64,000 bases of DNA from Bugula neritina (lineage: Eukaryota; Animalia; Bryozoa), in the NCBI GenBank assembly GCA_964035545.1, contig OZ037770.1:14002642-14066641 (forward strand), in the 5' to 3' direction. The notes below the pieces were generated by a model. The model was given only the letters and a program-made list of their open reading frames with translations. It had not been told where the DNA came from and made no database searches. This document shows, piece by piece, positions 319 through 61,319 of this stretch. A program made the translations under genes and the position numbers. Numbering within the stretch: the first letter of the stretch is position 1; every line of letters begins with the position of its first letter.

Positions 319-2121
319 TTATGGTACAATTCTGGGAGGTACTCTGTAAAATATAAAAATAAACTCAGTCTTCAACTTTAAACTCAACTTTAATTTATAT
401 GTTTAGATTAAAAAAAAATTCAATCAAGTTAAAAATATGTTGTAAAACAAAAATTGTTCGTTGTAATATGTATTTGAAAACTCAAACCGTTAACTGTAAG
501 CTTTCAGCAAACTTTTGATTAATTATAAGTAGCTTGAAAAAAATGTTGGCAATACCTATATTTATTATTTAACTAACTGTTTATTTATATGCTTAAACCT
601 ACTCATTTACTTATTTCTAAGATATTCATTGCATACAACGTCAATCTTATATATCTAAAATTTTGAAAACACTCTGTAGTATGAAAAATAAAATCTATAA
701 TGCAACACGTAAATATTCTACAGTAATAATATTAATTCGTAATATCTTAAATTCATATCTCTCTGACGCAGCTACATGCAGGCTTCAAAGAATAGCATAA
801 AATAAAATTTGCATGTAGCAAAACTGTAGGAAATTCTTATTATAAAAAAATGTAAGACATCTATATATAGCTGTTTATTTATAACTAAGTGGGTATACAC
901 TCACTGTATGCCTGTAACGCAGTACTTGGTGGTAGAATAGGGAGAAGTACAGCAGACGTCAGGTGCAGCACAATCAGCTTTACTTTCACAACCTGGGTTA
1001 TACTTAGGTCCAAATGGTTCCTGAGAGTTGGGGCATCTTCTGGTAAGTCTCACTCCGTTAGTCACTGTGTTCAGTATAATAAGTAGAATTAGGCTAATGA
1101 TATTACTTCTTCGTTTTTTAGTAGTTTTGGTACAGCTATACGTTTTGAGTTTTTATTTTTTTAGTCAATTAGTTAAATACTTTCACCATATGTTCAAAAA
1201 TTGTTTTATATTCATCCAGTATACAGTGTTTTTAATTTACAATAGTATGAACTGCCTCCCCAATTTTGTTTTATATTTGTTGAGTATAATATATACTATG
1301 TTGATAACAATAGTTGCAATATTAGGAGTTGTCTTCTCAATAATAATTATGTGTTTATAAACTATAACTCACCACAGAGGGAGGTGACAGGGCAGCCCCC
1401 ACTAGTTCTATATCCATCCTTACAGAACTTAGTGAAGTCTGCTGTTGGACAATCGACTAAAAAGATATGCATTACTCAAGTATTAAAGAATTTCAGTTGA
1501 GTATATAATATTATATAATGAAATGTGATTTTTATTTATTGATCTATTTAAGTTTTATATTTTTATTGTGTTTTTTTATATTTACTCGACGCTTTTAGTG
1601 ATATTTTTATTAAAACTAAACCAGTTTATAGTCAACTTACCACACTGGCAGTCCTGTTTCTCACAGCCACATGAATCCTTGACATAGCCTTTGGGACAAG
1701 AGTAAGGTGTGTCTCCAGGAAAGTAGGATCCACATTGGCTAGTAGGACATGGGTGGGGGCAGTGGGGGAGAGATGCTGATAAAAAATATTACAGCTACTG
1801 TATATTGTAATCTAAAGCTTCAAAGCTTGAAAAAACTTTGTTGGGAAAAGTGAGTATAGGGTTTTATTCTAATATAACACAGATCACAACAAAAAAATGT
1901 ACAATAAAATTTGTATATATAAAGTTAGGCTCTAAATAATACAAAACTGAGCTAATGGTAGTTGTGTTTATGTAAAATAATTCAATTTTTATGAATTATC
2001 ATGTAGATACCAAAAACGGCAGCCATTTTGATCACTCATAATAAAAATGAAATATTTTATTTTGCTACTCACCTGAACAAACAGCCAGAACTGCAAAGAA
2101 AGTAATGATGAGAGTATTCAT
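319..2121 (-). CDS. Paralogue A1: secreted Cys-rich protein (signal peptide, two antistasin-like modules, WAP-like module), 150 aa, 5 exons
   Basis: Exons (minus) 2121-2073, 1775-1641, 1456-1373, 1064-905, 343-319; all GT-AG, intron phases 1,1,1,2; 453 nt open. MNTLIITFFAVLAVCSASLPHCPHPCPTSQCGSYFPGDTPYSCPKGYVKDSCGCEKQDCQCVDCPTADFTKFCKDGYRTSGGCPVTSLCVTNGVRLTRRCPNSQEPFGPKYNPGCESKADCAAPDVCCTSPYSTTKYCVTGIQVPPRIVP*. Domain names are inferred from Cys spacing. Confidence 0.9.
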
Positions 2122-2180
2122 TCTTCTTATTCTTGTTTTATGACAAAACTGGTTATGAAAAATAAATGAAAACCACCTCC

Positions 2181-2204
2181 TTTTATACCAAAAAATTCAA
2201 GGAA
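2181..2204 (-). promoter_or_regulatory. A1 core promoter: TATAAAA plus TTCCTTGAA
   Basis: TATAAAA at 2187-2181, about 60 bp upstream of the ATG; TTCCTTGAA at 2204-2196; same layout in paralogues. Confidence 0.65.
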
Positions 2205-4071
2205 ATGTTGTTTAAATCATTTGTTGTGAAATTCAATATTTTTATTTTTAGTCAACAAAACTCATGCAGTGTTTCCAGGAACGCAGATATGATATAATTA
2301 TAACTAGCTGCACTGCCAACAAATATATTCAGGTGTCTTTATAATTTCCTGAACTCCAATATTCTGGTACCACACCATAATTATAGTACTCAATAATTGT
2401 TTAAATTAACATGCATTAAAGTTTGACTCAGCAAATTTAAATTGCGTAAAATAAAAGTGTTTAATTATAAGCCTAACAGTGTTACATATATCTTGCAACA
2501 TATAATAATAATATGACTTTATGGAGTTTTTGGACTAAATCAAAGCATATATTTAAAACTCAGAATTTGAATTTATATTCTTTGTTGTCCATCAAATGTA
2601 TTCATAAAGAGAACTTACATTAAAAAAGCTTCTATATTTGTAAAATAGTTTGACACGGCATTTGTGCTTTTGATGGTTTGTTATTTTAGTTACATTAGAC
2701 ATGCAACTATAGGAATAATTCGCAAAAAAGGCCTTTATAAATTTGATTTTCTGGCTAATAATAGCTTTGCATTTAAAAAAGTGTAGTGATTTTCACTTGA
2801 ATTGTCATAAGTAAAATCTGATCAAAAAAACATGCAGTTTGAAAGCAAAATTGTTTCTCCAATTTCTGCGATAAGCTTTGGCATTGGAATATATTGATGT
2901 AAAATAATTGCTATTTTAATATATTATCATTATAACTTTAGTTTGTTAGTACACATTTTCTGATAATGATGCTGTCAGCAGCATTATTATAAATGACGAG
3001 TTATTTCATCTCACAGGTTTAATAAGGTAGTGATACTTTCCTGTTTTACATAGCTGATTAAAGTTAAATTTGTTCAAATGTTATTTCAAGCTTCCAATTA
3101 TTATGGCTTACAATTAGTTCAGTTATTATAAAATCAAAGATGTCACTAATTCAAAAATTGTAACAAATGGATACATTTTTATAAAATATTGGGGCAAATA
3201 AGTTTATATATGCTATGTTTGCTTAAAAATATGTTGCAAGTCTATACTGGATGTGTATTATACAGCTCTATAAAAAACAGCATCATAGTTTATATTTTAT
3301 AATTTCTTGTTTTAAAACATAATTATAATGATGACATTCATCATGTTTGATTTTTACTTGAAATACATTTGTTTTTGGCCATTCCTCATATGTGTTCATA
3401 TCTTCAGTATAATGATGAAGCATCGCTACTGACAATGTTGTCCCAAATCCTGTACGTGGAAAGGCACATCCTTGTATACTCATATATAATATTAAAATAT
3501 CACATGTTTTCAATAGCCAATCAAGTGTAAAAAGTTCTAAATTGCATGATTTCTATACCGCATTATTTCTCTAATTTTAGCGTACAGAGTGGTATGCATA
3601 TGTGCACAGCATAAATAATTAGTATGGCATTTTTGCATTTGTTTTTGAAAAATATAAATGTTTCATAACTGTGAATATAAAGCTATTTTGTTGTGCAATG
3701 AGTTTTGTAACCAACATACAGTAGAACATTTTGAACATCTTGAAAAAAGAAAATATGTGTGTGTGTTGCTAAGAAATAAGATGATTTAACCTTTGACCCT
3801 GAAATGTGTGATTAGGCTACAATAGTGCTTTTTTATTATTATGAAATAAATAAATTATTAAGTAAATATTATTGAATTAAAAAAATATTGCAAGGAATGC
3901 AGAACGAGTTTGCAACTGGAACTATAAACTAACAATTCATTCGTCTATTGAAATGCATATTGTAAAAAATTGACTTTTCTTAAGTTTATAAGCTATGCAG
4001 AAAGCATGCAAGTTATATATACTTGCTTAATAAATAAAATCCACTAAAACAGCCTTATCAACATAACAAAA

Positions 4072-59634: not shown

Positions 59635-59687
59635 GTTGCTATGGATACAAATATAGGTTTAATTTCCGTGAACTTCTAGTATATAAA
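59635..59687 (+). promoter_or_regulatory. B3 promoter: X-box-like GTTGCTATGGATAC, TTCCGTGAA and TATATAAA
   Basis: X-box 59635-59648, TTCN3GAA 59664-59672, TATA 59680-59687. Confidence 0.6.
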
Positions 59688-59756
59688 GGCCAGTGTTTTA
59701 CAAACTCATCACAACATTCTACAACAGAACAAGTTTAACATTTAAACTGAGTGCTA

Positions 59757-61319
59757 ATGATGAATACTTTTGCTTTGACAGCTTTTGCTTTTCTAGCTGC
59801 TTGTGCAGCCTACACTGAGGGTGAGTAAATATTTATTTTCTTTATTTTTATTAGAAATAAAATCACTATGGAAACTTATTTTACTGTTTAACACATGAGC
59901 TTTTTTTTCTTGTAGGCAGTTTTTCTAATATTATAATTATGTAAATAATATTATTATATTACTGCATGAGCAAATCTTCATTATACAAAGAATATGGGAT
60001 CAATAATATAAAATTTTATTTAAATTAAATGTCTTCATTTGTCACATGCTGTTTCAATGGTTGATCGAACTTTGCCAAAGTTTTATTTCATTTAAAATTA
60101 TTGTTAATTTTTATCAATATATAACTTATTACTTTCACATGTCCATTAAATATTTTTTAGTTTCTTTGTAAATTATTGAAAATTATTTTATTGATCTTGC
60201 AAGTTTTAATCTGTTATAAATTCTATAAAAAGTAATAGTAAAGAAATTACAAAATAATTCATAGGAATAAAATACACTGCTTGAAGAAACATATAAACTA
60301 ATTTGACAAAAGATATATTTGTGTGTATGAATCAGGAGAAATCTTATATTTCATGATAATGCATGCCTATATATATATATATATAATATATATATATATA
60401 TACATATATATATATATATATATATATATATATATATATATATATATATATATATATATATATATATATATATATATATATATATATATATAATTATTTG
60501 GTTTTAGCATCTCGCCCTTCCTGTCCTCACCCATGTCCCACCAGTAGATGTGGATCCTACTTCCCTGGCAACACACCTTACTCCTGCCCCAACGGCTATG
60601 TCAAGGATTCATGTGGCTGTGAGAAACAAGACTGCCAGTGCTGTAAGTTGGTTGTATAGTCTCTAATCATTAAGTAAATCTGTATGGTAATATATTATTA
60701 TGGTGTGTAAATCCTTACTTTGTAATGTGACATTTTATATATCTAAATATATACAAGTATAAGAAATATATAAGACACTTTATATATCTAAATTACTGTG
60801 TTTTCTGTATGATTTTAGTTGGATGTCCCCCAACTGACTACACGAGATTTTGTAGAGATGGATATAGAACACGGGGAGGTTGTCCAAATGCATACTCTTG
60901 TGGTAAGTGACATAATAATTTAATATACTAGATACTATATACTAAGAATACTGTATAATGCAGTCATATTTTCATCTCTTGTATCACTCTACATATTTAC
61001 ATGATTTTCCAGTAACAAATGGTGTAGAGATTCAGTACAGATGTCCAAACCTAAATGAGCCAGCCAATAACCCAAGTTCTTACACCTGTACACATAAGAG
61101 TCAGTGTGGCCCTGCAGGAAGACTTTGCTGTAAAGTATACGGCAAGAGTGGCATGAGATGTGTTGATGGAATTGAGATCAGGTGAGCAGCTATGGATGGA
61201 TACATGCACAAGCACAAAATTAAATACAATGTGTATCTGTAACAGAATTTTATAGATGTTATCAATTTCTATTGTCTGTTATTAGAAAATAAATTGATGT
61301 TTATTGTAGTACTCACTAA
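59757..61319 (+). CDS. Paralogue B3: secreted Cys-rich protein, 153 aa, 5 exons
   Basis: Exons 59757-59820, 60508-60642, 60819-60902, 61013-61181, 61310-61319; GT-AG; variants SRPSC, RTRGGCPNAYSC and CTHKSQCGPAGRLCC; ends GIEISTH*. Confidence 0.9.
60368..60492. repeat. (TA)n microsatellite in B3 intron 1
   Basis: About 125 bp, ending ~15 nt before the exon 2 acceptor. Confidence 0.95.

Follow-up and report, generated by a model that had tools for sequence, protein, structure and literature searches.

In antistasin-type inhibitors the last six cysteine (Cys) residues pair 1-4, 2-5 and 3-6 (PMC6265900). In hirustasin, P1 Arg30 directly follows Cys29, and the P2 bridge Cys29-Cys48 clamps the reactive loop. 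In elafin, Cys23 corresponds to WAP Cys2; it lies next to P1 and is paired with Cys7. The inhibitory loop of elafin comprises Leu20-Leu26, with the scissile bond at Ala24-Met25 (PMC10098471). Both module types occur together in limpets, in the secreted proteins Lotgi1|201804 and Lotgi1|239125 of the Lottia gigantea shell matrix, whose modules were called protease-inhibitor domains (PMC3374290), and in P-vulgata_12 of the adhesive mucus of Patella vulgata, which its authors propose to be a stable protease inhibitor protecting the mucus (PMC7333891). Here we describe a stretch of 64 kb from the bryozoan Bugula neritina (contig OZ037770.1; called the window), which contains seven intact genes for small Cys-rich proteins, each built of two antistasin-like modules (X and Y) and one WAP-like module (W).

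An intact tandem array under purifying selection

The window is AT-rich (GC 27-34%). Genes were found by a six-frame scan for Cys-rich open stretches, by blastn with the exons of one copy and by regular-expression mapping, and were modelled by script. Similarity searches and folding used single exons; spliced models were used only for counts, alignment and the ratio of nonsynonymous to synonymous divergence (dN/dS). The initial annotation had described seven intact five-exon genes with shared intron phases, and the models bear this out. All 28 introns have GT..AG borders, the phases are 1,1,1,2 in each of the seven genes, and no frameshift or internal stop was found in them. Exon 1 carries the ATG and a hydrophobic leader, exons 2, 3 and 4 encode X, Y and W, and exon 5 is a terminal micro-exon. 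The lengths of exon 2 (135 nt) and exon 3 (84 nt) are invariant across the seven genes, as had been stated.

The predicted products are 150-153 amino acids long. Their hydrophobic N-terminus of 16-21 residues (mean Kyte-Doolittle 1.05-2.06), with small residues ahead of the first module, makes them look secreted, in line with the signal peptide claimed earlier; it was judged by hydrophobicity alone. The mature proteins of about 14.4 kDa (pI 7.9-8.4) contain 14-18 Pro per ~133 residues, no N-glycosylation sequon, and the 18 conserved Cys reported before, arranged 8+4+6 over exons 2, 3 and 4. A 19th Cys is present in exon 2 of g2 and g3, where Lys is changed to Cys in the C-P-x-G-Y motif of X (6433-6435 in g2, 13848-13850 in g3). 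The Cys count of these two proteins is therefore odd, and the additional residue may be a free thiol for dimerisation or cross-linking.

Two subfamilies are present in the window. Subfamily A comprises g1 on the minus strand at 319-2121 (150 amino acids; exons 2121-2073, 1775-1641, 1456-1373, 1064-905 and 343-319) and three plus-strand genes for proteins of 151 amino acids: g2 at 5997-8457 (exons 5997-6045, 6350-6484, 7161-7244, 7675-7834 and 8430-8457), g3 at 13410-15849 (exons 13410-13458, 13765-13899, 14578-14661, 15086-15245 and 15822-15849) and g4 at 20115-22333 (exons 20115-20163, 20461-20595, 21003-21086, 21298-21457 and 22306-22333). Subfamily B comprises g5, which lies tail to tail with g4 on the minus strand at 23690-25257 (152 amino acids; exons 25257-25197, 24491-24357, 24210-24127, 23988-23820 and 23699-23690), and two plus-strand genes for proteins of 153 amino acids, g6 at 30453-32198 (exons 30453-30516, 31350-31484, 31661-31744, 31884-32052 and 32189-32198) and g7 at 59757-61319 (exons 59757-59820, 60508-60642, 60819-60902, 61013-61181 and 61310-61319). 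Positions 319 and 61319 belong to the stop codons of g1 and g7.

A TATA box is located 66-85 nt upstream of the ATG in each of the seven genes (at 2187 for g1 and 5931 for g2). AATAAA follows the exon-5 stop at 64-216 nt in six genes (at 8522 for g2); the 3′ flank of g1 extends beyond the window start and lay outside the scan. Exon 5 of g4 differs from that of g2 and g3 by synonymous changes only, which supports the phase-2 reading of this exon in subfamily A. The intron 4 donor (GTAAGT or GTGAGT, phase 2) carries an in-frame TAA or TGA in every gene (e.g. 7833-7840 and 906-899). A retained intron 4 would stop translation at once, so any doubt on the exon 4/5 junction affects only the last 3-9 residues. 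The junctions are also supported by an independent RefSeq gene model from another bryozoan, Watersipora subatra: its locus matches in having one module per exon, in module order and in the split codons at the junctions, and it ends in a micro-exon about 5.9 kb downstream.

Pairwise dN/dS was 0.04-0.34 across all 21 pairs of the window genes, with 0.20-0.34 for g1 against g2-g4 and 0.04 for g3 against g2. Introns of the older duplicates are about 50-70% identical and often alignable over a fraction of their length, and the claim that the genes stayed intact while their introns diverged was thus upheld. Between subfamilies, divergence was lowest in X (dN 0.07) and highest in W (dN 0.98); within subfamilies, the three module exons had an omega of 0.05-0.21. 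These intact genes have been amplified in tandem and are kept under purifying selection. The synonymous difference between subfamilies in exon 2 (pS 0.47) is well below that in exon 3 (0.84) and exon 4 (0.74), and the introns flanking exon 2 are unalignable (e.g. around 6350-6484 and 60508-60642). This points either to gene conversion confined to exon 2 or to a nucleotide-level constraint.

Self-comparison of the window showed that g2 and g3 lie in recent duplication units of ~7.4 kb that are ~91% identical and that the g4 unit is older (~78% identity). A unit of ~5 kb, 56914-61603 versus 27556-32478, is shared by g7 and g6 at ~81-87% identity. The exon-2 peptide gave 14 matches in the 216-Mb assembly: seven in the window, two located 2.6 and 9 kb past the window end, and five on contig C2. 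The two neighbours are also intact genes with leader exons and intact splice sites. One, g8 (C6:14068387-14069925; L001:2388-3926), is B-like, its exon 4 reading directly into a stop so that the tail is different; the other, g9 (C6:14074327-14076881; L006:1327-3881), is divergent (61% in exon 2). The array therefore contains at least nine genes in ~77 kb, which extends the tandem amplification noted for the window, and open frames and splice sites are kept in 9/9 copies. At least five paralogs form a second cluster on contig C2 at 3.604-3.646 Mb (L002, L004, L007 and L009), where the modules occur in the combinations X-Y-W, X-Y-W-W' and EGF-EGF-X-Y-X-Y-W.

Module identity and altered inhibitory loops

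With plus-strand gene g2 as the example, X (exon 2, 6350-6484) has 8 Cys, that is a complete six-Cys antistasin-like core and one extra Cys pair. Y (exon 3, 7161-7244) has 4 Cys and is an antistasin-like core without Cys2 and Cys5. W (exon 4, 7675-7834) has 6 Cys and is a WAP-like core without WAP Cys2 and Cys7.

Pfam was scanned exon by exon for g2 and g7 and also over the whole genome; its gathering cut-offs are 21.2 bits for antistasin (PF02822) and 20.8 bits for WAP (PF00095). Exon 4 of g2 (subfamily A) matched WAP at 15.2 bits (E 0.026), below the cut-off, and exon 4 of g7 (subfamily B) gave no WAP match. The only antistasin match in the exon scan was exon 2 of g7 (9.7 bits), and the window exons were absent from the antistasin matches listed for the genome. 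Across the family, antistasin was the sole Pfam family matched by X, in 12 of 17 members and below threshold (best E 5.6e-4); Y matched antistasin in 5 of 13 members (best E 6.3e-3) and W matched WAP in 8 of 13 (best E 7.2e-4). The Y module of a long-form paralog on contig C2 (C2:3618430-3618480) passes the antistasin cut-off at 24.5 bits and so ties the family directly to antistasin.

Profiles of the three modules were aligned by hhalign to 12 antistasin and 11 WAP exons of the same genome, all above the Pfam cut-offs. X matched antistasin at 94.5% (P 7.8e-8), Y matched antistasin at 96.5% (P 9.3e-10) and W matched WAP at 91.8% (P 7.3e-7, 44 columns). The cross-controls gave 0.1% for X against WAP, 0.7% for W against antistasin and 1.1% for Y against WAP. 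Cys-richness alone therefore cannot explain the matches. X and Y are homologous to antistasin, and W to WAP, at the profile level only. Of the antistasin-like/antistasin-like/WAP-like order in the initial annotation, what stands is this profile homology, with controls, together with weak structural matches of W; what it had expected from PF02822 and PF00095 was found only as sub-threshold matches of the window exons.

An AlphaFold2 (AF2) model of W (exon 4) had a predicted local distance difference test score (pLDDT) of 73. In a wide VIA search with this model, half of SLPI (Z 3.3), omwaprin (Z 3.3) and nawaprin (Z 2.7) took ranks 2-4 of 48,161 chains. The structural matches of W to WAP proteins are weak, yet concordant.

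X keeps all six antistasin Cys and has 11 residues between Cys2 and Cys3, compared with 3 in canonical domains of the same genome. Of its two extra Cys, one is near the N-terminus of the module and the other in the D-x-C-G-C segment. Between Bugula-type and Watersipora proteins the Cys2-Cys3 loop, G-x3-P-G-x-T-P-Y, hardly varies. The antistasin spacing C-x4-C-x3-C-x10-C-x2/3-C-x-C is thus found neither in X, with its long loop, nor in Y, without Cys2 and Cys5. As Cys2-Cys5 is missing, Y has lost exactly the P2 bridge, and the 11-residue loop of X replaces the P1-P2' tripeptide by a long conserved loop; neither module keeps the canonical reactive-site feature. The WAP Cys2 and Cys7 positions are non-Cys in all 13 W modules of the family, which places W outside the eight-Cys WAP pattern. 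Elsewhere in the genome, six-Cys WAP domains without the same Cys2 and Cys7 pass Pfam (C9:1.93 Mb and C6:0.24 Mb). Within the window proteins, variability is highest in the W loop before Cys3. As read from the sequence, all three modules are altered in the disulfide or the spacing that clamps a canonical inhibitory loop.

The same genome has at least 21 antistasin and at least 53 WAP exon matches above the Pfam cut-offs. Clusters of such canonical exons are located at C3:28.753-28.756 Mb, C3:29.485-29.496 Mb, C9:1.927-1.934 Mb and C6:15.37-15.43 Mb; they include loci in which antistasin and WAP alternate, and tandem six-Cys WAP variants on C9.

Homologs and candidate functions

The X profile gave 14 matches at E ≤ 0.001 among 1.84 billion representative proteins. 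The best five, which were looked up, were one Watersipora subatra protein, one cluster including a Bugula neritina protein, and three single-exon genomic fragments. Eight lower matches proved by Pfam scan to be repetitive, mostly bacterial proteins and were rejected as noise; the 14th (P0014), a repetitive 153-amino-acid sequence, was rejected by eye only. The occurrence of X in bryozoan records and genomic fragments only fits a lineage-restricted family, as had been proposed. Both named proteins are long forms: XP_067951340.1 of W. subatra has 265 amino acids and is named 'antistasin-like', and KAF6024266.1 of B. neritina is a hypothetical protein of 279 amino acids, to which a C2 protein of this assembly is ~96% identical. 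The KAF6024266.1 model skips a Y-type exon that is present and open in the C2 cluster at L007:7739-7816. A contig of an ENA metagenome assembly encodes a Y module, a proline-rich linker and an X module in this order, as in the long form.

Neither the exon-2 profile nor a word-based search with the Watersipora protein recovered the short X-Y-W form from the large protein collections. In the word-based search, the homologous part of the query returned nothing and the whole protein only itself. In the ESM Atlas, the Watersipora protein gave only WAP and antistasin leads below threshold, and exon 2 gave nothing. A metagenome scan with the exon-2 alignment produced two GC-rich bacterial false positives, which were discarded, and a search of one literature library found nothing on such proteins in bryozoans. 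The family has so far been seen only in bryozoan records. It is not wholly unrecognised, as the initial annotation had it, since long-form homologs are deposited in GenBank and RefSeq, one of them under the name antistasin-like, and limpet proteins with WAP and antistasin domains are published.

We consider it fairly probable, from the sequence evidence, that real tandem genes here encode exported, protease-resistant extracellular binding or defence proteins that would act in a non-canonical mode. Each protein would consist of three disulfide-knotted modules, one per exon and all between phase-1 introns. X would add a further disulfide and an enlarged, invariant loop to an antistasin-like core, and Y and W would be antistasin-like and WAP cores minus one disulfide. 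Longer EGF-X-Y-X-Y-W proteins, also present in this genome, in Watersipora and in Bugula, are the most likely source of the short form, by exon shuffling or loss, and later expansion by unequal crossing-over would have given subfamilies A and B. The exported proteins may shield a secreted matrix or the surface of the colony from microbes or from proteases of foreign origin; the conserved modules X and Y would form the scaffold, and the W loop, which diverges fast, would set target specificity. The alteration of the inhibitory-loop clamp in all three modules favours a non-canonical mode over tight-binding inhibition, and a crustin- or waprin-like antimicrobial or binding mode appears somewhat more likely than classical serine-protease inhibition. 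The strong divergence of W between subfamilies, compared with the low divergence of X, was counted for the W loop as a diversifying recognition surface, and the defensive or protective role given to the limpet proteins by their authors was counted for defence.

A more specific possibility, which we advance only tentatively, is a bryozoan-specific neofunctionalisation of inhibitor scaffolds into a new ligand-binding or antimicrobial protein, with the X loop as a new conserved binding site. It is suggested by canonical loop features having been given up while the X loop stayed nearly invariant. Such proteins could possibly serve to keep in check the microbes on the surface or the bacterial symbionts that bugulids transmit vertically.

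Several results weigh against binding or defence proteins of antistasin and WAP descent. No window exon reached the Pfam gathering score in the scan of g2 and g7. The AF2 model of exon 2 was unusable (pLDDT 50), and a Foldseek search of the Protein Data Bank (PDB) with the exon-4 model returned nothing at E ≤ 0.001; of the structural check suggested in the initial annotation, only the VIA ranks of SLPI and the waprins are favourable. Even there, a Z of ~3 ties with knottins, which follow right behind at Z 2.5. A PDB sequence search gave only a chance match to a zinc-finger linker for the exon-2 profile and nothing for the exon-4 profile. The signal peptide is called from hydrophobicity only, and a pI of 7.9-8.4 makes the mature proteins only mildly basic, unlike many strongly cationic antimicrobial peptides. 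The sole public sequencing run with window DNA has unspliced contigs across introns and intergenic DNA and no spliced joints; by this continuity it behaves as a DNA run.

The main rival to a binding or defence role is that the products are structural parts of a secreted matrix (cuticle or ectocyst, a larval or rhizoid adhesive, or the lining of the brood chamber), dosage providing bulk and disulfides toughness. The near-identical tandem copies g2 and g3, with their dN/dS of 0.04, fit a demand for quantity, their odd Cys could cross-link, the products are rich in proline, and proteins with WAP and antistasin domains are plentiful in the shell matrix and adhesive mucus of limpets. However, the limpet studies read these domains as protective inhibitors and not as a structural element. 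The window proteins are small (14 kDa) and have no low-complexity or repetitive structural motifs, and their W loop has diverged between subfamilies in the way expected of a recognition surface. We consider a structural role rather unlikely. Still harder to accept, and in our view distinctly unlikely, is classical canonical (Laskowski-type) inhibition of serine proteases (MEROPS I15 and I17) with several inhibitory heads per molecule. All three modules are homologous to inhibitor families, the Watersipora homolog has the name antistasin-like at NCBI, and the variable stretch of W corresponds in position to the inhibitory loop of elafin, lying between WAP Cys1 and Cys3 (14 versus 15 residues). 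But Y is without the Cys pair that forms the P2 disulfide, the three residues P1-P2' have become an 11-residue loop in X, and W is without WAP Cys2, which is next to P1 in elafin, and its partner Cys7. The X loop is moreover invariant, whereas typical reactive sites are hypervariable.

It is very improbable that X is a growth-factor-binding domain of the IGFBP N-terminal type (PF00219) and the proteins are secreted signalling modulators. The Cys3-Cys4 segment (C-P-x-G-Y ... D-x-C-G-C) locally matches the IGFBP core (hhalign 38%, P 3.3e-4), but over 14 columns only and not across the 12-Cys domain with its GCGCC motif. The antistasin match is more than twice as long with a P about 4000 times lower, no Pfam IGFBP match was seen at E up to 5-10 in 17 members, and nine tandem copies would be unusual for a signalling modulator; this candidate was rejected. 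We give hardly any weight to the array being transcriptionally silent or mis-modelled, either as recently dead duplicates or as exons of other transcripts. The DNA-like behaviour of the only public run and the failure to find the short-form protein with the exon-2 profile or the word-based Watersipora search would agree with it. However, the reading frames and splice sites are kept in all nine array copies, a TATA box is present in 7/7 window copies and a poly(A) signal in the six scanned, and the RefSeq model of another bryozoan uses the same exon order. In addition, dN/dS is well below 1 in 21/21 pairs, across duplications old enough for synonymous saturation. From the sequence features we infer that the window genes are spliced and expressed and that their products are secreted and active. 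The gland-specific expression, the dosage effect and the roles as toxin, mucus, adhesive or cocoon component put forward in the initial annotation go further than the sequence supports.

Bryozoans are poorly annotated, and the array is missing from the public protein sets searched. It shows in a clean form the shuffling of modules that occupy one exon each, with phase-1 introns, and a later birth-and-death expansion; it is also a natural experiment in which antistasin and WAP scaffolds have each lost a loop-clamping disulfide. Should the proteins turn out to be abundant in secretions, surface defence, antifouling or protection of a matrix would be candidate roles in this animal, which fouls surfaces and bears symbionts. 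With three knots in 14 kDa, the compact scaffold is of possible interest for protein engineering. No long-standing question is opened: both domain types, and proteins that combine them, were known before from other lophotrochozoans.

Surrounding sequence and comparison with known systems

Intron 1 of g6 contains a 221-bp insertion at 30985-31205 with a tRNA-like start by eye; it was not seen in g7 intron 1 on reading by eye. The insertion is a high-copy repeat (~3,900 first-look genome candidates, 40 of which were scored as 92-96% identical) and is probably a young short interspersed element. Scans of the window for tRNA genes (ARAGORN) and with Rfam were empty. Long microsatellites are found at 4030-4350, 11100-11750 and 60370-60490; they are of the types (CA/GT)n, (TATG/ATAC) and (TA)n, and the (TA)n run stops ~15 nt short of the g7 exon 2 acceptor. 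Genes g6 and g7 are separated by a 27-kb gap, in which the block 44100-46600 is richer in GC and purines and contains several open reading frame fragments of 77-118 amino acids. By eye, a Y-L-G-V-type motif in one of them suggested the reverse transcriptase tail of a long interspersed element, but Pfam gave no significant match and a retroelement was not confirmed.

The leech antistasin-type inhibitors hirustasin, guamerin and antistasin (PF02822, MEROPS I15) share with X and Y the core C-P..C, C-x-x-G-[YF] and a G-C near the end. They are secreted and disulfide-rich, as the window proteins are predicted to be. In contrast to them, X carries two additional Cys and its P1-P2' region is 11 residues long instead of 3, Y is without Cys2-Cys5, the P2 disulfide of hirustasin, and the bryozoan modules are without the four-Cys subdomain found at the N-terminus of the leech inhibitors. 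Of the WAP four-disulfide-core proteins (SLPI, elafin and snake waprins; PF00095, MEROPS I17), W keeps the C-P start, the C-x5-C-x5-CC centre and the last Cys, but it has only three disulfides, WAP Cys2 and Cys7 being missing.

Crustacean type I crustins are small, secreted, multigene proteins with a role in innate defence, in which a Cys-rich N-terminal part precedes one C-terminal WAP-type domain. Their Cys-rich region is not antistasin-like and their WAP domain has eight Cys, and the likeness is an analogy of architecture only. The molluscan WAP and antistasin proteins are lophotrochozoan and secreted, and contain the same two module types as the bryozoan family. They have canonical InterPro and Prosite domains, mostly in long arrays, whereas the bryozoan proteins, compared with them by description, are short and combine a fixed X-Y-W order with reworked loops. 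True homologs are the long-form bryozoan paralogs (XP_067951340.1 and KAF6024266.1), which have the same X, Y, W order, one module per exon and a terminal micro-exon; they differ in that one or two EGF-like modules and a second X-Y pair precede these modules. The family is a reworked version of a protease-inhibitor or defence protein type known from molluscs and leeches.

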